The notes under the pieces were generated by a model. The model saw only the letters and a list, made by a program, of their open reading frames with translations. It did not search any database and was not told the DNA's origin. The position numbers and the translations under genes were made by a program. A DNA stretch of 51,093 bases from Macrostomum lignano (Eukaryota), in contig NIVC01004306.1 in NCBI GenBank assembly GCA_002269645.1, positions 1 to 51,093 of the forward strand, written 5' to 3'. Position 1 is the stretch's first letter. Each line of letters begins with the position of its first letter. Of this stretch, positions 39,201-51,027 are shown in pieces.

Positions 39201-40402
39201 ATCCAACTCATGCAAACTCATCCAGCTAACATTACGCACTCAGATTATGCTGTAGCCCAGTGACACGGGGGGAAGGCCGCACAGGGCGGTGAGCAGTTCG
39301 TCCCGCCATCAATTAGTACAAAAATTAAGCTTCAGTTGCAGTCAGATAAGAATGTGCAGATAAAGATTGGACTGGCACAGGCTGGAGCTAACTTTGCTCA
39401 GCCATCTCGCTGCCACAGAAGGCTCTGTGCTGAATTCTGGATAAACTGTATGTCCATGGACCTGGACATGGACCACTGTAGATATCAAATATGGATTAGA
39501 AACCAAAAATTTATACATGTATAGATAAGGGACTTTTACACAGAAAAATAGCAAAAATACTAGCAATCTGTGCCCCCGCTATATATAAACAAATGCAGCT
39601 TTTGACCTTGTAAATTCGATATTGTAAGTGCCCTAATAAAAAAGATTTTTAAAGCAAAAAAGCATCAGCCCCGAGAGCCAGCTGTCTAGCCTGAGATATC
39701 AACATACCTCATGAGCTTTGGCATCAACGCCTCCCTTTAAGACTTTGGCTTGGCCGACCAACAACTTCCAATTGACCCTTGACATCTCAGCAACCCCCTC
39801 CATGAGCCCCAGCATCTCAGCAATTCAGACGTTCCTACAGCGCAGAGAACTGGACGCTGACAGACTCGCTCAACCAGCAAGCAGACGATTCGCATAGAGT
39901 GGCCGACGAACAAGTCACCAGTGCAGCACTCTATCGCCTCGTTTGTCCAGGCAACCTGTTGCACTGTCGGCGACGCTGCAGGCACCTCACCGGTGATGAC
40001 AGGCTACTCATCGACTGCTGCGTACTGGCTGACGCCGATGCTGACGTCAGCAGAGCGCCCAAGCCTTGAGACGGGCCCTCAGACGCTAACATGTAGAAAA
40101 AAATTAAGTTTCCACTCAACGCCCAGTCCAGTGGATTATCCAGGGATCCATGGATTGCCAAAGCCTTTCCCTATTGGCCAGTGCCGCTCGACGTCACCCC
40201 AGCGAGCCCAAATTGAAGCGGACTGCTAAAAGAAGATAAAACAGCCGCTGCCAGCAGCGCCAGCCGGAACTTTTGCAGCCGAGTGAAGAAAAGCAGAAAC
40301 AGCTTTCTCAAGGGGAGAAAATCACAGCACTGCTGCTTCCCCTTATCCCGCATTGCTCAGGTTAACAGGGTTCGATCCGCAGTCCATCCAAAGGTCACTA
40401 CA

Positions 40403-41740
40403 ATGCCATCAATTACTGACGGCAGCCTCACAGCCAAGCTAGCCGTCCATCTGCTGCTTCTTGTGCTCATCTCGATGCAGTGCAGCTGCTTTCACATCAA
40501 CGAAGGTAAGATGAGGCTCTGGTTAGCTAGATGCTGGCTGTGGGATTTTGTTCCCAGTTTGAAATCTCAGCTATTGGGATATCTTCCCTTACATGTTCGT
40601 ATTTGTTAATTGTTCCAGAAGCAGAGTGCGTGCAGATGTGCATATCAAACAGACTGCAGTGCTGTATGCAGTCGCTGCTCAACTCTGTCCTTAAAGCTGC
40701 TGTTTAACTTGGACATGCGTGCTCTGGCTTAGCACCTTTGTGCCACCAGCTGCTGGGCAAACATTTGCCTTCATTCTCCAATTTGATGTCTCTGAGGCGC
40801 GACACTTTTGGGGGGTGGGACAATTTACTAATTTCTTATCACTTTATCGCCTCTACTGTGCCACCTGGGCAACCAGGGCAACCAGGTGGCACAGACGGCC
40901 ATTCAAAGCCAATTAAATTGTTTTCTAGGTAAAAGCAAGTGAAATTGGTCGATTTCGGGAGGTCTGAAAATAATAATAACCAATTTTGATAATTTGGGTT
41001 CAGTAAACAAGACTGATTTGCAAATTGTCTGGCTTGACATTTTATTTACAGTAGCTTTATTCTCATCTCCTACTCACAGTAGTTAGCATTATAACAGAAA
41101 GTGCTAAAATCAGTAATTTATTAGTAATTCTTTACAATAAGCTCGAATTCAGCTTAGGAAAGGGACTTCCAAATCTGTTCGGGCTCGATGGTTTTGTTTT
41201 AATCTTAAGAAACATCCGGTGATACAAGGCTAAAACAAACTGACTCATTTAAACAAACTGGTGTTTAACAGACGGAATTACGAGAGCTCGTAAAACTCGA
41301 AAGAAACTGACAAATGTCCGTTTCTGGCCTTTTCAACTATGGCTATAAGGATTGTAGCTCCTTTATGGTTTTCCTTCAATAAAAACTCCGGTGTTAATGC
41401 ATTTAAACAAACAGCAATCTCCGACTCTCTGACTACCATAGGCGCTGCTGACAAGGGGGAACAAAATTCTGATGGTATCGAACTCGACGAGGGAGGCGTC
41501 ATCAGCATTGACGACGGCCTCCAGGACGGTCTTGGCAACCGCCTGCCAATCGGTCAACACCCTGCCAAGACTAAGCGCTTCATGTACCACTCGAACGGCG
41601 ACTGTCCAGTGTTCCGTGTCCAGTGTTTCAACAGCTACGACTGCTACAGGCAAACCGGCGACTACAACTATCGCTGCGTGATGCACCGCTGCGCCGTCAG
41701 CTGCTTCGACATGCGGCCGTACATGAAGTCGACGAAATGA
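40403..41740 (+). CDS. Secreted cysteine-rich prepropeptide, copy A (133 aa; exons 40403-40505, 41442-41740)
   Basis: MPSITDGSLTAKLAVHLLLLVLISMQCSCFHINE-G|AADKGEQNSDGIELDEGG...AKTKR FMYHSNGDCPVFRVQCFNSYDCYRQTGDYNYRCVMHRCAVSCFDMRPYMKSTK*. Phase-1 GT-AG intron; AATAAA at 41834; frame conserved in copy B. Confidence 0.8.
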
Positions 41741-42464
41741 CGCCCAAGTCTCATCTGGACTTCAAGCATTGCCTGCCGCGCAATGATGTAAAACTGCCAC
41801 AACCGCTGCGTGCACTCATTGAGATCGGCACTTAATAAAAAATGCAAAACAAAATATAAACCGCTGTCGGGCTAATTTCTGGCTTTGGAATGTCCTGACC
41901 GTCGGAAATCTTCAAGTGCAACAGTACTTAAAGAGCTTAGCAATACTTTGGTATTCATTTCCTCAATGAAAATAGTTGATTAAAACTCTTTTAATCGGTG
42001 AAATTTTACCAATACTACCTAAAAAACTGTGCTCATAATTAACAACCGATTGCCATAGCAGCTCCATCACCATAGCAACTGGATGAGTTCAAAGCACGGC
42101 TTTATCACGATAGCAGCAAATATATTATGCGGAATGGCGATGCAACCAGTATATAATGCATCCTAAAATTTCATAGCACACCAATATTTCCCTCAACTTA
42201 ATGGCCGGGCGTAACGCACTGACTGGAGGGTGAGTTTCAGAGCCGCTCGGGTCACGGATGCCTGAGACAGTCAGTCATAAAGCTCCGTGTCCATTCAGTC
42301 CCCGCGGGAATGGCGCGGACATTCGGAGTCATTTTTACTAGCTGACTGCCATTTCGGTGGGCTGAATAACGCAACTGGAGCAGCTGGGGGGGGGGGTGGT
42401 AAATCTTCCTCAGGCTTTGACTGACCGACCGCACAGAGTGGATAAATAAAGTAATGAGTCTTGC

Positions 42465-42962
42465 ACTGGGATACAAAGGCACTGGGATACTACAAGGGCA
42501 TTGAGATACAAGGGCACTGGGATACAAGGGCACTGGGATACAAGGGCACTGGGGTACAAGGGCACTGGGTACAAGGGCACTGGGATACAAGGGCACTGGG
42601 GTACAAGGGCACTGGGATACAAGGGCACTGGGGTACAAGGGCACTGGGGTACAAGGGCACTGGGATACAAGGGCACTGGGATACAAGGGCACTGGGGTAC
42701 AAGGGCACTGGGATACAAGGGCACTGGGATACAAGGGCACTGGGATACAAGGGCACTGGGGTACAAGGGCACTGGGATACAAGGGCATTGAGATACAAGG
42801 GCATTGAGATACAAGGGCACTGAGATACAAGGGCATTGAGATACAAGGGCACTGAGATACAAGGGCACTGGGGTACAAGGGCATTGAGATATAAGGGCAT
42901 TGAGATTCAAGGGCACTGAGATACAAGGGCACTGGGATACAAGGGCATTGAGATATAAGGGC
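42465..42962. repeat. Minisatellite, 16-bp unit GGGCACTGGGATACAA, in the spacer of the inverted duplication
   Basis: About 31 copies. Confidence 0.94.
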
Positions 42963-44391
42963 CCTCCTTAAAAGAAACTGGTGGCGCCACACCTGAACTC
43001 ATCATCCAATCGACCATGCGCATTTGGCTATCCTAATCAAAGGAGGGGAGGTGTTCACAGGGATTCTTCCCAGTCCAGGTGCATTTGCTCAGTCTCCAAG
43101 TGTCGGCTATACTTGTGGAGCAGATCAGCGGGAAGGCCGCTCTAGTGAATCATGTTTTGCTGCTCCATCTCGGGGGGGGGGGCTACAGACGCCCCCAAGC
43201 GGGGGCTTTGCCAGTATTTCTGTCCTCCGAAAGCAAAATGGAAATCTCTTGTTTCGCCCCACTGTTTGCGCGACTTCTTAAATCAAAATCTAAGATCTCT
43301 CTACTCAATAGTATTTCTAAACGAACTTCATTCAACAGGCCTTGGTAAGAACTCCAGTATTTAATTAACATGGTCTTGTTAGCAGAGAGGAGAAAGGTAG
43401 ATGAGATTCAGAGACTACCATGAAGAAGGGACGAGGCGTACTTGATTGAGTCGGAAATCAAGATGGGAAATGTAAAATTGATAAGAAAAGTCAGAAAAGT
43501 TTTACAATGCAATGAAATGAATTTTGAGAAGTTCTGAGATGGGAAAACAGTTGGTATGCGCGAGGGATCCTTGTAGATGATGGAAAGATGCTGGTAGATG
43601 GGGAACTTTGAGATGGGGTTGTTTTGAGTATTCTGTGGCTAAAATTTCTGGGTTGCTATTAAGATCTTTTGATGTTTAAAACGTCAGTTTTTTTAGTCTG
43701 TTCTGCAGTGCCTCGTATGTCCCTCTCTAGAGTGAAAGTAAAGCAGATCTTAGTGATTATTTAACTGCCTTTCAGATTTTTTTCTTGATTTTAAATCAAG
43801 TCGAGTAAAGTTTGAGTGAAGGTGATTTTTTAGAATCTTCACCTTTGATGACCGATATGTGAGTGATTTGGGTCCAGGTCGAACGCTGACTTTCAATCTC
43901 TGATTGTTCATCTCTGGTCAGTGTCCTCAGTCGGAGAAGTGGCTTCTACATGACATTTCAATTCTAGTAAAAAGGTGGAGCAGATGCCAATGGAATTACA
44001 GAGCTGGAGAGAATAGCCAACTTTGGTGTCACACCCAAGTGTCGTTCAATTCTCGAATCAAGTGCATGGCTTCATTCCCCTTTTTACTTTTTATTAATTT
44101 TCGTACAAGCGGAAGTCGTTAAAACTGTAGATTTTCAAAAAGTCGGTCAACTAACGAAGTTAAATTTTAGTACACAGAAGTTCTTATAATAGAAATGAAT
44201 ACCAAAGTATTGCTCAGCTCTTGAAGCACTGTTGCACTTGAAAATTTCCGGCGATCAGGACATTCCAAAGCCAGGTATCAGCTCGACAATTGATTGAGTT
44301 TTTATTTCGCATTTAAAGTTAGTTTGGATCTCAATGAGTGCACGCAGCGGTTTGTGGCGGTTTTACATCATTGCGCGGCAGGCAATGGGCG

Positions 44392-45525
44392 TCACTTCGT
44401 CGACTTCATATACGGCCGCATGTCGAAACATCTGACGGTGCAGCCGTGCACAACACAGCGGTAGTAGTAGACACCGGTTTGCCTGTAGCAGTCGTAGCTG
44501 TTGAAACACCCCACACGGAACACCGGACAGTCGCCGTTCGAGTGGTACAAGAAGCGCTTACGATTATACTTGACGGTGCGTTGACCGTTTGGCAAGCGGT
44601 TGCCAAGGCCATCGCTAGCTCTGATGACGCCTCCCTCGTCGAGTCCGATTACGTCCAAATTTTTTTCTGTTTCGCCTTCGGTAGTCGGAGATTGCTTTTT
44701 GTTTAAATGTACTTACACCGGAACTTTTTTTATTAAAACAAAACTATCGAGCCCGAACAGATTTGGAAGTCCCTTTCCTAAGCTGAATTCGAGCTTATTG
44801 TAAAGAATTACTAATAAATTACTGATTTTTAGCACTTTCTGTTATAATGCTAACTACTGTGAGTAGGAGATGAGAATTAAGCTACTGTAAATAAAATGTC
44901 AAGCCAGACAATTGGCAAATCAGTCTTGTTTACTGAACCCAAATTATCAAAATTGGTTATTATTATTTTCAGACCTCCCGAAATCGACCAATTTCACTTG
45001 CTTTTACCTAGAAAACAATTTAATTGGCTTTGAATGGCCGTCTGTGCCACCTGGTTGCCCAAGTTGCCCAGGTGGCACAGTAGAGGCGATAAAGTGATAA
45101 GAAATTAGTAAATTGTCCCACCCCCAAGTGTCGCGCCTCAGAGACATCAAATTGGAGAATGAAGGCAAATGTTTGCCCAGCAGCTGGTGGCACAAAGGTG
45201 CTAAGCCAGAGCACGCATGTCCAAGTTAAACAGCAGCTTTAAGAACAGAGTTGAGCAGCGACTGTATACAGCACTGCAGTCTGTTTGATATGCACATCTG
45301 CATGCACTCTGCTTCTGGCAAAATTAACAAATACGAACATGTAAGGGAAGATATCCCGATAGCTGAGATTTCAAACTGGGAATAAAATCCCACAGCCAAC
45401 ATCTAGCTAACCAGAGCCTCACCTTCGTTGATGTGAAAGCAGCTGCACTGCATCGAGATGAGCACGAGAAGCAGCAGATGGACGGCTAGCTTGGCTGTGA
45501 GGCTGCCGTCAGTAATTGATGGCAT
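44392..45525 (-). CDS. Secreted cysteine-rich prepropeptide, copy B (128 aa; exons 45423-45525, 44392-44675)
   Basis: Same signal exon, then G|ETEKNLDVIGLDEGG...YNRKR FLYHSNGDCPVFRVGCFNSYDCYRQTGVYYYRCVVHGCTVRCFDMRPYMKSTK*. GT-AG intron conserved. Confidence 0.8.
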
Positions 45526-46957
45526 TGTAGTGACCTTTGGATGGACTGCGGATCGAACCCTGTTAACCTGAGCAATGCGGATAAGGGGAAGCAGCAGTGC
45601 TGTGATTTTCTCCCCTTGAGAAAGCTGTTTCTGCTTTTCTTCACTCGGCTGCAAAAGTTCCGGCTGGCGCTGCTGGCAGCGGCTGTTTTATCTTCTTTTA
45701 GCAGTCCGCTTCAACTCGGATTCCGACACTAATCGATTTGATAATAATCAGGCAGCGGGTAAAAGTATCGTGTTGGGAGAAATTCGAACTAAGGCACATT
45801 TCCCTTTTTACCGATTTCTTTAAGAATAGTGAATATAAAACTAATGAGTTTATGGAGTGAAAAATTTGTCCTGAAATTGGCTCATTGGGGGATAAACAAG
45901 TGGCAGGTAAAATCATGTTGAAATATTTTGAGCTAAATAACTCGCCATTTTTCCCATTTTCTTCGGGAAAATATACGAATATTCCCAAACGATGAATTCT
46001 GACGTACAAATAGGATTAATGAGATCGGGAAAAATTCTGTCCGGAAAGTGGTTTACTGAAGATTCAGCAAGCAACAGGTAAAAGTGTCGTATCTGAAGAT
46101 TTTTGTCAATTTCTTTGCGAATAATAATTATAGGACAAATGGGATTATGAAGGTCGTGAAAAATTCAATCCTGAAAACCACCTTTCTTGAAATCTGGTAG
46201 TTAGGGATTTTACAAATGGGAATAAAGCTGGTAGATAAGGGGGACGTTGTATGATCTAATTTTTTTAAATTATTCGAATCTTTGAGGCTAAACAATTTTA
46301 TATCAAGTTGTCATCAAGTTATATTGATTGCTTGCTTGCTTTCATAAGCTCAAACTTTAACATAGTCAAATCCTGCTACGAGTTTGTTTGAGTTCGTTAT
46401 TTATTGGTCACCTCCGCTAGCTCACCACTGAAGCAAACTCGAGGAAGTGTAAAGTTTTGAGCCTGTGAAAGCGACAATGTAAATAGGAAAGTGGAAAGTC
46501 GTCGAAGCCGAAAATATTAATTTGTATAAAAAGCTTATAAGATAAAACTATGTTAATTGAATATGAACGGGATAATGTATAAAACTAGGATATTCAATCA
46601 CTATATGTTAGATCAAGACCAGGAATACTTTTCAGGCAATTTTTCAACCTCTGATGAAGCTTAGGAGAGCTAGTATAGTCTTAAACTGCAGTCAGCTATA
46701 GTCTAAGCAGACTTAGCAAATAAAGTTGGCCAAGAAAGTCAAATAAAGAATGAGAGGGAAAGGATCGGATGCGTGGGCAGGTTGCCAAAGGCTTTCTAAC
46801 TTCGAGTATGAAAATCAATAAATCTTGCTTGTTTGCAAGATTTAGCAGCGAGCGCGGCCTCCCCAAGAATTTACGTACCGCGACCTCTGACCTGGCAATC
46901 ACCTGATCTTGCCGACTCAAGAGAGATCGTGTCGTTTGAGCGGCTAATTAGAATGAT

Positions 46958-47820
46958 CAGCCGGTCTCAGACTCAATGGGGAATTGCTCAGCCGGTCTCA
47001 GACTCAATAGGGAATTGCTCAGCTGCCTCAGACTCAATAGGGAATTGCTCAGCCGCCTCAGACTCAATGGGGAATTGCTCAGCCGCCTCAGACTCAATGG
47101 GGAATTGCTCAGCCGCCTCAGACTCGATGGGGAATTGCTCAGCCGCCTCAGACTCAATGGGGAATTGCTCAGCCGCCTCAGACTCGATGGGGAATTGCTC
47201 AGCCGCCTCAGACTCGATGGGGAATTGCTCAGCCGCCTCAGACTCAATAGGGAATTGCTCAGCCGCCTCAGACTCAATGGGGAATTGCTCAGCCGCCTCA
47301 GACTCGATGGGGAATTGCTCAGCCGCCTCAGACTCGATGGGGAATTGCTCAGCCGCCTCAGACTCAATAGGGAATTGCTCAGCCGCCTCAGACTCAATGG
47401 GGAATTGCTCAGCCGCCTCAGACTCAATAGGGAATTGCTCAGCCGCCTCAGACTCAATGGGCAATTGCTCAGCCGCCTCAGACTCGATGGGGAATTGCTC
47501 AGCCGCCTCAGACTCAATAGGGAATTGCTCAGCCGCCTCAGACTCAATGGGGAATTGCTCAGCCGCCTCAGACTCGATGGGGAATTGCTCAGCCGCCTCA
47601 GACTCAATGGGGAATTTCTCAGCCGTCTCAGACTCAATAGGGAATTGCTCAGCCGCCTCAGACTCAATGGGGAATTGCTCAGCCGCCTCAGACTCGATGG
47701 GGAATTGCTCAGCCGCCTCAGACTCAATGGGGAATTTCTCAGCCGTCTCAGACTCAATAGGGAATTGCTCAGCCGCCTCAGACTCAATGGGGAATTGCTC
47801 AGCCGGTCTCAGACTCAATG
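46958..47820. repeat. Minisatellite, 30-bp unit AGCCGCCTCAGACTCAATGGGGAATTGCTC
   Basis: About 28 copies. Confidence 0.96.
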
Positions 47821-48699
47821 GATGTTGCTAATATGAGCTCATTATGATGTCGAGTTAACTCCATGGCATGCAGGTGAGAACAGCCTTGATAGAGACTTTA
47901 AATTTTAAGTTAGGAATAAAAACAGGCAGTCATTAAATTTGAGCCATAATCAAAGCTGATTTTGATTAAAACAAAATTATTTTTATTTGTTTTTGAGCTC
48001 ATCACACGACTGGATTTTGAGCACAGAATAAAATTATATTAGTAATTAAAGAATAGCAAGTTGACTTTTTAGGGTCTAAAATAATCAGCATCTCAACCGC
48101 AACGCTGATAGGCACATTGTTTAGATGTATAGACACAACGATCGGGAACTGTTCCAAAATAGGATTCAACTTAAAACAAGAGCAGAGGCTACAGATAGAA
48201 TTATGCAACAGATGCGTATCACGCTACTAATAAGTAGGAGAGACGTAATTGCGCTAGCCGAAATTGAAGATTTTAGCCTAGGCAAGAGCTTTATATTAAT
48301 AATGTGCACGATTGTATGGCTTTCTTTTAAAATTTCAAAAGTATTTGAAAACAAAAGCATATAAGAAGTGGAAATCTGTAACACTGCTCAGCAAGATTTT
48401 TATTTAGAACTAATAGACAGACAGATAAATCGAGCGATGGGGACATTATAGAATTAGAAAATAACTAAACTATGCAAATAAAAATAGTAGACCGATTTTT
48501 GGATTAAATTTTGGCAGCAGCCATGACGTCAGAGCCAGTACTGTCGGTAAGAGGGAGGCTCTTTAGTCTATGGCCAAGTGTAGTGCTAGTCATCAACAGT
48601 TCGTGTTGCAACGTTGCTGAGACAAAAATATTAGTGGCCATCTATTTCGCTGAGTTCAAGAACATGCTGTCTCCATGACCACATTGCTAGGGCAACAAA

Positions 48700-49136: not shown

Positions 49137-51027
49137 TCAGGGGGCATAGTCAAACTTGAACACCGTAGCCTGGCTGTACTTCGATCCGGGCGTCAGCAGT
49201 GACGACGGAAATTCCGGATGGTTGAGCGAGTCGGGATAGAGCTGGGTCTCGAAGCACAGGCCAGCGTGGCGGCTATACTGGCAGCCGCCTTTGCCAGGCA
49301 CCGAGTCAATGTAATAGCCGGTGTAGAACACCAGCACTGGCTGGTCAGTGCGGCAGCTCAGCCTCCGGCCGCTGCTCAGCTCCTCGGCAACTCCGGCAGC
49401 TGGTGCCGATTCGTCATCAACCGACTGACCAGAGGCCGAGTCTAACACGTAGATGTGATCAAAATTGATGCCGTCAGACAGTTTGCGGCCGGCGCCGCGA
49501 AGGTCGGACGGCGTGCCATCAACGGGCAGTACGCGGCCAGTGGGCAGCAGCTCGGCGTCCAGTTCGATCAGACGGGAGCTGGCAAGCTGCCAAAAGTGGG
49601 GATAGGGTAGACTGGATGATGAGGCTGTTTGGGATTGGGGAGGTTGGATGGTGAGGCTGGATGATGAGGCTGTTTGGGGATCGGGGAGGGGGGTTGGATG
49701 ATGAGGCTTTTTGGAGATGGGAATCGGGGAGGCTGGATGATGAGGCTGTTTGGGGATCGGGGAGGCTGGATGATGAGGCTGTTTGGGGATCGGGGAGGCT
49801 GGATGATGAGGCTGTTTGGGGATCGGGGAGGCTGGATGATGAGGCTTTTTGGGGATCGGGGAGGCTGGATGGTGAGGCTGCTTGGGGATAAGGGAGGTTG
49901 GATGATGAGGCTGTTTGGGGATTGGAGGCTGGATTATGAGGCTGTTAGCGGATTAAAGAGCATGGATGATGAGACAGCATAGGATTCGGGAAGTTAGATG
50001 ATGAGGCTGTTTGAGGGCCGTTTGGGGATTGGGGACGCTGGTGATAAGGTTAGCTACATACATGCGCAACCCCTGATTCACACTGGCCGTGCGAATTACT
50101 TTTTGACCAAAAATTGGACTTGCCTGTGAAATGAACCTAGAGAAAGATTAATGCAATTTTTGGTAAACGGCAGGAGTAACTCGGTGGTCTTATTAAGACT
50201 AAAGGCCTAGTCATCTAATTAGTACTACGTCTATTTTTGGGATTAAATAGGCTGAATTAGGAGACAGTTTGAGGATTTGGGAGGCTTGGTGATGAGACTA
50301 TTTGGTGATGAGGTCTGACGAGCTAGGACTTCTAAAAAGATTGGCGGCTGCTAATTCAGTTGATAATATTATCAACTAGGCCATCCTTAGGCTTAAGTCC
50401 CTCCGCATAAGCGCAGTGAATTCCGAACCTGGACTCGATGATTGGAGACGTCACCGGACGAGTGGCCAGACAGATTGAAGTAGGCGTGATTAGTGAGGCT
50501 CACTGGACACGGTCGGTCGCACTCGGCCGAGTAGTTCAACCGCAGACTGTTGTCATTAGAAACTGTGTAGGTGACGGTGACGCGCAGGTTGCCAGGGTAG
50601 CCATCTTCGCCGTCCTTGCTAAGCAAGCTGAGCGTGACGGAGTCCTCGCCCAGATTGTCAATGTTCCACACTGCTCTGGTGAGTCCGCGCTCGCCGCCGT
50701 GCAGACTGTGCCGACCGTGATTGCGAGTGACGCTAACGGGTTGATCGCCCCCAGGCAAGCTGAACTGGGCGTCCTTGACTCGGCCTGGCTGGCGTCCAAC
50801 AACAAAGCCGAAGTAGCACGGACAGCTCTCGTAGCCTTGCACCGTGTCGTAGCCGAGCACGACGTCGGTTGGGGGGTCGCACGGGTTGCGCGAAGGGCAG
50901 TAGAGACTTTGCAGAGCGGCACCATAGGTCAGCACGTGGCCTCGAAGCCGCCAGGGCTGCGCAGTACAATCTTTTGAACTTCGCGACCGTCACTTGTACG
51001 GCCGAATAGTTCGGACACGGCTACCAT
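49137..51027 (-). CDS. GALM: Aldose 1-epimerase (galactose mutarotase); exons 50429-51027 and 49137-49586; 1-nt frameshift near 50938
   Basis: LTYGA.LQSL..P, DVVLGYD, YFGFVVGR, NHGRHSLHGG, DGEDGYPGNL, SLTNHAYFNLSG, LPTG, FDHIY, TDQP.L.FYTG, GLCFETQLYPDSLNHPEFP; phase-0 GT-AG intron; ~349 aa if one base is restored. Confidence 0.93.
49610..50050. repeat. GALM intronic minisatellite, ~33-bp unit GGGAGGCTGGATGATGAGGCTGTTTGGGGATCG
   Basis: About 10 copies with decaying ends. Confidence 0.88.

Follow-up and report, generated by a model that had tools for sequence, protein, structure and literature searches.

A Macrostomum lignano family of predicted secreted six-cysteine peptides with a weak likeness to the WAP core

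Do two short genes facing each other on contig NIVC01004306.1 of the flatworm Macrostomum lignano (assembly GCA_002269645.1) encode genuine secreted cysteine-rich peptides and, if so, do these belong to any described family? Within the window, the whole analyzed stretch of 51,093 nucleotides (positions 1 to 51,093 of the contig), copy A occupies 40403-41740 of the forward strand and copy B 45525-44392 of the reverse strand. An earlier note on this DNA, made from the sequence alone, had described the two as a pair of unassigned genes for secreted six-cysteine peptides with toxin- or antimicrobial-type precursors. Our follow-up shows that A and B are real, intact paralogous genes, correctly described as such in that note, and that, as judged from the predicted precursors, their product is a secreted cysteine-rich peptide of familiar architecture. 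Among known families, the WAP domain provides the sole recurring resemblance, which is weak but reproducible.

Each gene consists of two exons with intact open reading frames (ORFs), and the spliced translations (133 residues for A and 128 for B) match the structure originally proposed, including the 53-residue C-terminal peptide and its cysteine spacing, C-x6-C-x5-C-x10-C-x4-C-x3-C, with the cysteines at positions 9, 16, 22, 33, 38 and 42 of the mature part. The copy A protein is 100% identical to GenBank entry PAA47864.1, a transcript-derived "hypothetical protein" (Mlig017203), which runs across the A splice junction (...HINEGAADKG...). The annotation of this assembly was built from RNA sequencing (RNA-seq) data and de novo transcripts using StringTie, TACO, TBONE and TransDecoder (PMC5730564). 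Because PAA47864.1 is continuous over the junction and the annotation is transcript-based, A is transcribed and spliced as proposed, with the exon boundaries at 40505 and 41442. The 159 nt (53 residues) of 5' untranslated region (UTR) preceding the start codon remain open in frame and contain no ATG; thus, 40403 is the first AUG, and the open frame explains why the annotated A coding sequence (P0001) is called "partial". Copy B and its two sister copies were found neither in the GenBank annotation of the assembly nor in the protein collection searched. The family was previously known solely as a "hypothetical protein", and copy B and its sisters are new to the annotation.

An intact inverted A/B pair is also present on contigs NIVC01000540.1 and NIVC01001444.1, yielding six A/B copies, all with intact ORFs; the sister B copies are located at 14363-15503 in one of the two additional loci (L001) and at ~14000-15155 in the other (L002). 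The occurrence of the pair on two further contigs fits the redundancy of the assembly (PMC5730564). In agreement with the earlier count, the mature peptides of A and B differ at 8 of the 53 residues, none of which is one of the six cysteines. Over the mature peptide, synonymous changes per site (dS) between A and B amount to 0.28-0.45 and replacements per site (dN) to 0.056-0.082, with dN/dS of 0.12-0.26 (about 0.2) and no indels; among the A copies, dN/dS is 0-0.1. Given that the pair is intact on two other contigs and that synonymous changes per site exceed replacements, its conservation is far beyond chance. The pro-region, compared between A and B, shows dN/dS of 0.48 and three indels. At the nucleotide level, A and B share 88-91% of positions over the mature part, as against 70-74% over the pro-region and 84-86% over the 3'UTR. 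The mature part being more alike than either the pro-region or the 3'UTR, the C-terminal peptide is being held by selection.

Copies A and B occupy the two arms, 40213-41961 and 45714-44192, of an inverted duplication that was recovered both in the list of inverted repeats and by blastn, with 97% identity between A and the reverse complement of B over 40213-41221 and 77% over 41365-41961. The 3' ends of the genes point toward each other across a spacer of ~2.2 kb that contains a 16-bp minisatellite. Similarity is distributed unevenly along the arms: all six A/B copies agree at 97-99.7% of positions in the 5' half, which spans ~190 bp of upstream sequence, exon 1 and ~700 bp at the start of the intron, whereas in the 3' half of the genes A and B are only 70-91% identical, with a sharp boundary within the intron, at ~41221-41365. 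Judging from the sequence comparison, the near-identical 5' half looks like a gene-conversion tract or the result of a partial re-duplication. Fast evolution of exon 2 and the peptide was ruled out as an explanation, the divergence boundary being positional and the mature peptide being the best-conserved stretch of the 3' half.

The A and B precursors share the same layout, namely, a hydrophobic leader, a pro-region, a dibasic KR site and the 53-residue peptide, the site being KTKR in A and NRKR in B, in accordance with the original description. The A leader reaches its maximum hydropathy, 3.2, within residues 17-25, and cleavage after C29 would satisfy the -3/-1 rule. Both criteria agree with a predicted signal peptide in all three types of paralogues that make up the family (see below), and the predicted cleavage leaves FH as the new N-terminus in both lineages, that is, A/B and the paralogue Mlig006190. 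The mature peptide is cationic throughout, with a net charge of +3 in A, +4 in B and +5 in Mlig006190.

The two genes described as a pair are real, but represent just one locus of a family that, in M. lignano, encompasses three paralogue types (Mlig017203 type A, type B and Mlig006190) with three loci each, nine loci in all. Mlig006190 is a 117-residue protein that has its own leader and a pro-region unrelated to that of A. Its mature part is 53% identical to that of A, with exactly the same six-cysteine spacing and the junction ISKR/FLFHSNGDC... (the slash marks the predicted cut), and its gene contains one phase-1 intron right after the leader, as in A and B. The Mlig006190 intron (L004, ~10095-10290) is made up almost wholly of (CAAC)n microsatellite repeats. 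All three paralogue types have the junction KR/F-x-x-HSNGDC in common. The K-R-F within it never varies while the pro-regions upstream are unrelated, and this contrast provides the strongest sequence evidence that KR is genuinely processed. Thus, the combination of leader, propeptide, processing site and disulfide-rich peptide noted originally recurs in an independent paralogue. By architecture, not homology, the family can be classed as convertase-processed secreted peptide precursors, with the cleavage being predicted.

To delineate the species range of the family, the profile of the mature peptide was compared with 1.84 billion representative proteins in an exhaustive HMMER scan at a cut-off of E <= 0.001. 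Three matches were obtained, namely, the query's own cluster, P0008 and P0009/P0010, which correspond to Mlig006190 g1-g3. P0008, a 995-aa protein from an ENA metagenome (E = 4.5e-13), was rejected as a relative because it is a translated tandem repeat in which 14 weak 'CPLYRV'-like stretches are summed. This false positive illustrates that HMMER E-values for short cysteine-rich profiles can mislead. Hence, no true relative outside M. lignano was found among the 1.84 billion proteins, which probably do not include other Macrostomum species. When 5.8 billion proteins were searched by word index with A and Mlig006190 as queries, M. lignano entries alone came back; the alignment as query drew 0 candidates, apparently because 53 columns are too few for this kind of search. 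In JGI metagenome contigs scanned at the DNA level, 116 patterns were matched, 0 of which were confirmed. Accordingly, "restricted to M. lignano" here means unseen elsewhere in the sequences searched.

As the earlier note had surmised, no described family claims the peptide. Pfam searches with precursors and mature peptides yielded 0 matches above threshold, the PDB, searched by sequence with either a single peptide or the family profile, yielded nothing but LDL-receptor class A modules at non-significant values (E = 1.4-9), and the scan of 1.84 billion proteins retrieved M. lignano relatives only. Two sub-threshold Pfam matches, one of A alone to DUF5332 (E = 0.012) and one of Mlig006190 alone to Nodulin_late (E = 2e-4), were dismissed as cysteine-motif noise. 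The characterization of the genes as "unassigned" holds only in part, because A is already annotated as a hypothetical protein and carries an automatic Kunitz label in UniProt: the UniRef entries A0A1I8H804 and A0A1I8JBZ1, which are identical to A, are named 'BPTI/Kunitz inhibitor domain-containing protein'. The likeness to BPTI/Kunitz domains consists of six cysteines and a C-x3-C at the end, but spacing, profile comparison and fold all disagree. The family spacing is x6/x5/x10/x4/x3 versus x8/x15/x7/x12/x3 in Kunitz (PF00014), the Pfam Kunitz model is silent at E <= 10, an hhalign comparison with five Kunitz domains aligns a single column (P = 0.61), and there are zero Kunitz chains among the Foldseek matches of either AlphaFold model of the family. 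We conclude that UniProt has very probably mislabelled copy A and consider the corresponding explanation, a serine-protease inhibitor of the BPTI/Kunitz type, effectively refuted.

Kunitz, Kazal, EGF, beta-defensin, CS-alpha/beta and LDLa domains were each compared with the family by hhalign and turned down. The LDL-receptor class A module shares the N-G-x-C-x6-C-x5-DC start with the peptide but differs from it in that the family has no acidic calcium-binding cluster and a different second-half spacing (hhalign P = 0.03, 18 columns). Likewise, legume late-nodulin/NCR peptides (PF07127), which are secreted and defensin-like, have a C-x5-(D)C...C-x4-C motif in common with Mlig006190. The match of Mlig006190 (E = 2e-4) scores 22.2 or 19.7 bits, below the gathering score of 30.4 bits, and neither A nor B matches. 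Late nodulins are a plant-lineage family defined by an origin in legume nodules, and we regard this match as convergence of a short cysteine motif.

The CS-alpha/beta defensins and scorpion toxins were rejected because the family has neither the CxxxC nor the CxC motif and hhalign gives P = 0.083 over 10 columns. Architecturally, the precursors do resemble invertebrate pre-pro-defensins and other convertase-processed antimicrobial peptides, which combine a signal peptide, an often anionic propeptide, a dibasic site and a cationic three-disulfide peptide of 40-55 residues; the CS-alpha/beta cysteine motif is, however, missing from the family, and template-modeling scores (TM) to CS-alpha/beta structures in Foldseek are ~0.26-0.31. 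The same evidence bears on the idea, raised in the earlier note, that the peptide is an ion-channel-blocking or membrane-active toxin for prey capture or defence. Many venom peptides have this precursor layout, and scorpion CS-alpha/beta toxins appear low down in the Foldseek lists. However, these matches have TM of 0.26-0.31 and a root-mean-square deviation (rmsd) of 4.8-9 Å, the CxxxC...CxC motif is absent, and there is no sign of diversifying selection, the mature dN/dS of about 0.2 differing from the diversifying pattern typical of toxins. Moreover, M. lignano grazes on diatoms and is not known to possess a venom apparatus. Nothing in our results points to a toxin, and we regard this explanation as highly improbable.

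What remains is the resemblance to the WAP four-disulfide core (PF00095, PS00317, PS51390), a domain with the disulfides C1-C6, C2-C7, C3-C5 and C4-C8 and a central CC doublet. The earlier note had remarked that the peptide recalls WAP but has only six cysteines, and hhalign and Foldseek, each weakly, picked out WAP again. Compared by hhalign with an alignment of six WAP domains typed by hand, in which SLPI was checked against PDB chains, the family profile obtained a score of 20.4 (P = 4e-4, probability 34%) over 35 columns covering the whole domain. WAP was the best of eight small disulfide families, the seven others, including Kunitz, LDLa, Kazal, EGF, beta-defensin and CS-alpha/beta, scoring about 7-13.1. 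The score of 20.4 was reached by 0 of 200 column shuffles and 0 of 200 shuffles in which the cysteines were kept fixed (shuffle mean ~10, sd 2.2), so that residues other than cysteine must contribute to it. The motifs behind the score are G-D-C-P corresponding to G-x-C-P, D-C to D-x-x-C, and R-C-V-x3-C-x3-C-F-D to K-C-C-x3-C-x3-C-L-D.

The structural models point, again weakly, in the same direction. AlphaFold models of the A peptide and the Mlig006190 peptide (mean predicted local distance difference test values, pLDDT, of 76 and 75) both display a short helix followed by a beta-hairpin. Among PDB chains, the highest TM in Foldseek for both models were found for SLPI domain 2, elafin and omwaprin (0.40-0.48), with rmsd of 1.3-2.4 Å over ~30 residues. 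With SLPI, elafin, omwaprin, invertebrate single-WAP proteins and crustin-type proteins the family shares a small, cationic and, as predicted here, secreted product; the G-x-C-P at the first cysteine; a C-x5-C with Asp preceding the second cysteine; a [KR]-C-x4-C-x3-C end similar to K-C-C-x3-C-x3-C; and a predicted short helix and beta-hairpin that superpose on SLPI and elafin. The differences include a five-residue insertion before the hairpin, a missing or shortened protease-loop segment between WAP C2 and C3, and a propeptide with a predicted KR cleavage. Taken together, the profile comparison and the models suggest that the peptide may function in the manner of a WAP-type core and may be descended from one, even though the family definition does not apply to it.

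Extending this comparison to function, our preferred, if tentative, interpretation is that the peptide serves as an extracellular WAP-type host-defence effector acting on microbial surfaces or on microbial or digestive proteases. In this scenario, the leader would be cut off co-translationally, after about residue 29, and furin or a proprotein convertase (PC)-type enzyme would cut behind the conserved KR in the secretory pathway. The peptide released would be cationic, ~6 kDa in size and 49-53 residues long, with three disulfides, and would adopt a fold in which a short helix packs against a beta-hairpin, similar to a reduced WAP core minus two cysteines. The protease-binding loop of SLPI and elafin lies just after WAP C2, and in the hhalign alignment the family has a deletion where these proteins carry the loop; the canonical protease-binding segment would thus be shortened in the peptide. 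Because this stretch is deleted, an antimicrobial or host-defence peptide of the WAP type is more likely than a classical tight-binding serine-protease inhibitor.

Several observations weigh against the WAP-type host-defence interpretation. All the WAP signals fall below normal significance (hhalign probability 34%, Foldseek E >= 0.7): the E-values of the Foldseek matches to WAP chains are only 0.7-6.8, and in the second Foldseek search the top match by E-value was not a WAP chain but a poorly fitting scorpion toxin. The Pfam WAP model (gathering threshold 20.8 bits) did not match any of seven family sequences at E <= 10, whereas the control, SLPI domain 2, scored 42.2 bits. The peptide has six cysteines instead of the eight that define WAP and no CC, the position of the second C of the doublet (34) being Val in all paralogues; C16 aligns with either WAP C2 or WAP C3 depending on the alignment, so that the identity of the missing cysteine pair is equally ambiguous. 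The alignments given to AlphaFold held five sequences from one species only. The late-nodulin match of Mlig006190 is equally weak, which implies that motif-level matches arise easily among small cysteine-rich peptides. In addition, WAP proteins normally have no dibasic-cleaved propeptide. As to the precursor itself, the description of the pro-region as acidic stands for A (net charge -5) but not for B (+1), which is not anionic. Outside support for a splice junction is confined to A: that of B (45423/44675) was placed by homology with A, and alternative in-frame AG acceptors occur near the chosen one, at 44711, 44666, 44630 and 44618. With regard to expression, Mlig017203 occurs in no searchable full text of a paper, and both Mlig017203 and Mlig006190 are absent from the supplements searched of M. 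lignano papers. Finally, the invariant N-terminus and the purifying selection would be explained by a receptor ligand no less well than by an antimicrobial.

The last point is central to an alternative in which the peptide is a hormone or a neuropeptide-like or pheromone-like signal, cut by a PC at KR and contacting its receptor via the invariant N-terminus F-x-x-H-S-N-G-D-C. We consider this possible, although less probable than host defence, behind which it comes closely because of the invariant N-terminus and the purifying selection. A signal peptide, a spacer, KR and a C-terminal peptide constitute the typical prohormone layout; K-R-F and the first eight mature residues are near-invariant between paralogues that are just 53% identical overall; and the mature peptide evolves under purifying selection (dN/dS about 0.2; between A copies, 0-0.1), with the pro-region free to vary. 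Conversely, the precursors contain neither an amidation signal nor additional dibasic sites, Pfam and PDB searches revealed no likeness to known six-cysteine hormone families, and the conserved N-terminal G-D-C-P also matches the structural G-x-C-P of WAP.

A further alternative is a reproductive or exocrine gland secretion, for instance, a prostate or seminal-fluid protein, a shell-gland product, or an adhesive or rhabdite accessory protein. The product of a small, predicted secreted, lineage-restricted and duplicated gene family would be in keeping with such a role and, purely as background, two published accounts describe many species-restricted, prostate-limited secreted transcripts in M. 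lignano (PMC5977470, PMC7336406). However, the latter account reports Macrostomum reproductive proteins to be fast-evolving (PMC7336406), unlike the conserved mature peptide; the identifiers Mlig017203 and Mlig006190 do not occur in the supplements of PMC7336406 searched; and the sequence indicates no organ. Nothing in our data points to the seminal-fluid role that the earlier note had listed, and a gland secretion of this kind appears unlikely.

If the WAP link is true, a four-disulfide inhibitor/antimicrobial scaffold would have been reduced by one disulfide and have acquired a propeptide of the prohormone style, and the peptide would offer a tractable innate-immunity or signalling molecule in M. 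lignano, which serves as a regenerating flatworm model with transgenesis (PMC5730564) and RNA interference (PMC4490696) in use. The broader proposition that this is a flatworm-restricted three-disulfide family, whether as a pared-down version of the WAP core or as a novel mini-fold, with its closest homologues only in Macrostomorpha and with new biology, such as that of a signalling ligand or a host-defence effector, seems to us rather doubtful. Lineage-restricted families of cysteine-rich secreted peptides are common, and otherwise this one would be one more of them; as it stands, it opens no long-standing question. The practical gains are copy B and two sister copies missing from the public annotation, and the exposure of the Kunitz label and of a gene model that fuses the peptide to a neighboring channel.

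The coordinates of the features of the locus are collected in Table 1.

Table 1. Features of the inverted A/B peptide gene pair (window positions; a slash marks a predicted cleavage)
Feature	Position	Strand	Basis
Arm A of the inverted duplication: ~190 bp upstream, whole gene A and 3'UTR	40213..41961	+	blastn, inverted-repeat list
Gene A 5'UTR as annotated; gene call begins at 40244	40244..40402	+	annotation, sequence
Gene A exon 1, coding; hydrophobic leader MPSITDGSLTAKLAVHLLLLVLISMQCSC/FHINE, 34 codons + 1 base, followed by phase-1 intron	40403..40505	+	translation
Gene A intron; donor GTAAGA, acceptor ...accatAG (AG 41440-41441)	40506..41441	+	junction matched by PAA47864.1
Gene A exon 2 (41442-41740), pro-region with KTKR end	41442..41578	+	translation
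Gene A predicted mature 53-residue six-cysteine peptide, FMYHSNGDC...KSTK; stop 41738-41740	41579..41737	+	translation
Gene A polyadenylation signal AATAAA	41834..41839	+	sequence
16-bp minisatellite, 31 copies, in the spacer, outside both genes	42463..42962	.	repeat scan
Arm B of the inverted duplication	44192..45714	-	inverted-repeat list, blastn
Gene B polyadenylation signal AATAAA (forward strand TTTATT)	44301..44306	-	sequence
Gene B predicted mature 53-residue six-cysteine peptide, FLYHSNGDC...KSTK; stop 44394-44392	44395..44553	-	translation
Gene B exon 2 (44675-44392), pro-region with NRKR end	44554..44675	-	acceptor set by homology with A
Gene B intron; donor GTGAGG, acceptor ...ccgaAG; 97-99% identical to the A intron over the first ~700 bp	44676..45422	-	sequence comparison
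Gene B exon 1, coding; leader peptide identical to that of A	45423..45525	-	translation

Upstream of the pair, extending to ~34480 on the forward strand, lies a gene for a TRPM2-like cation channel of ~1,800 aa with LSDAT, Ion_trans and NUDT9-like domains, and a TRPM2-like channel also adjoins the peptide pair on contig NIVC01001444.1. An older model, P0007 (UniRef100_A0A1I8I8E7, 1437 aa, 'Ion_trans domain-containing protein'), strings together the TRPM2-like channel, a translated SRAEQ/SRAEP repeat and the entire peptide precursor; this fusion is almost certainly a mis-prediction. Downstream, at ~49137-50935 on the reverse strand, there are ORFs similar to aldose 1-epimerase, and the equivalent gene at sister locus L001 contains the Pfam domain Aldose_epim. 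The contig displays a strong G-over-C skew across 34-38 kb and is densely populated by long, highly regular mini- and microsatellite arrays, including (ATAG)x226, a 56-mer x30, a 40-mer x27, a 16-mer x31 and a 30-mer x29. Such arrays are located, for example, at 22594-23498, 34595-36267, 38102-39196, 42463-42962 and 46957-47821, and some of them yield long spurious ORFs.

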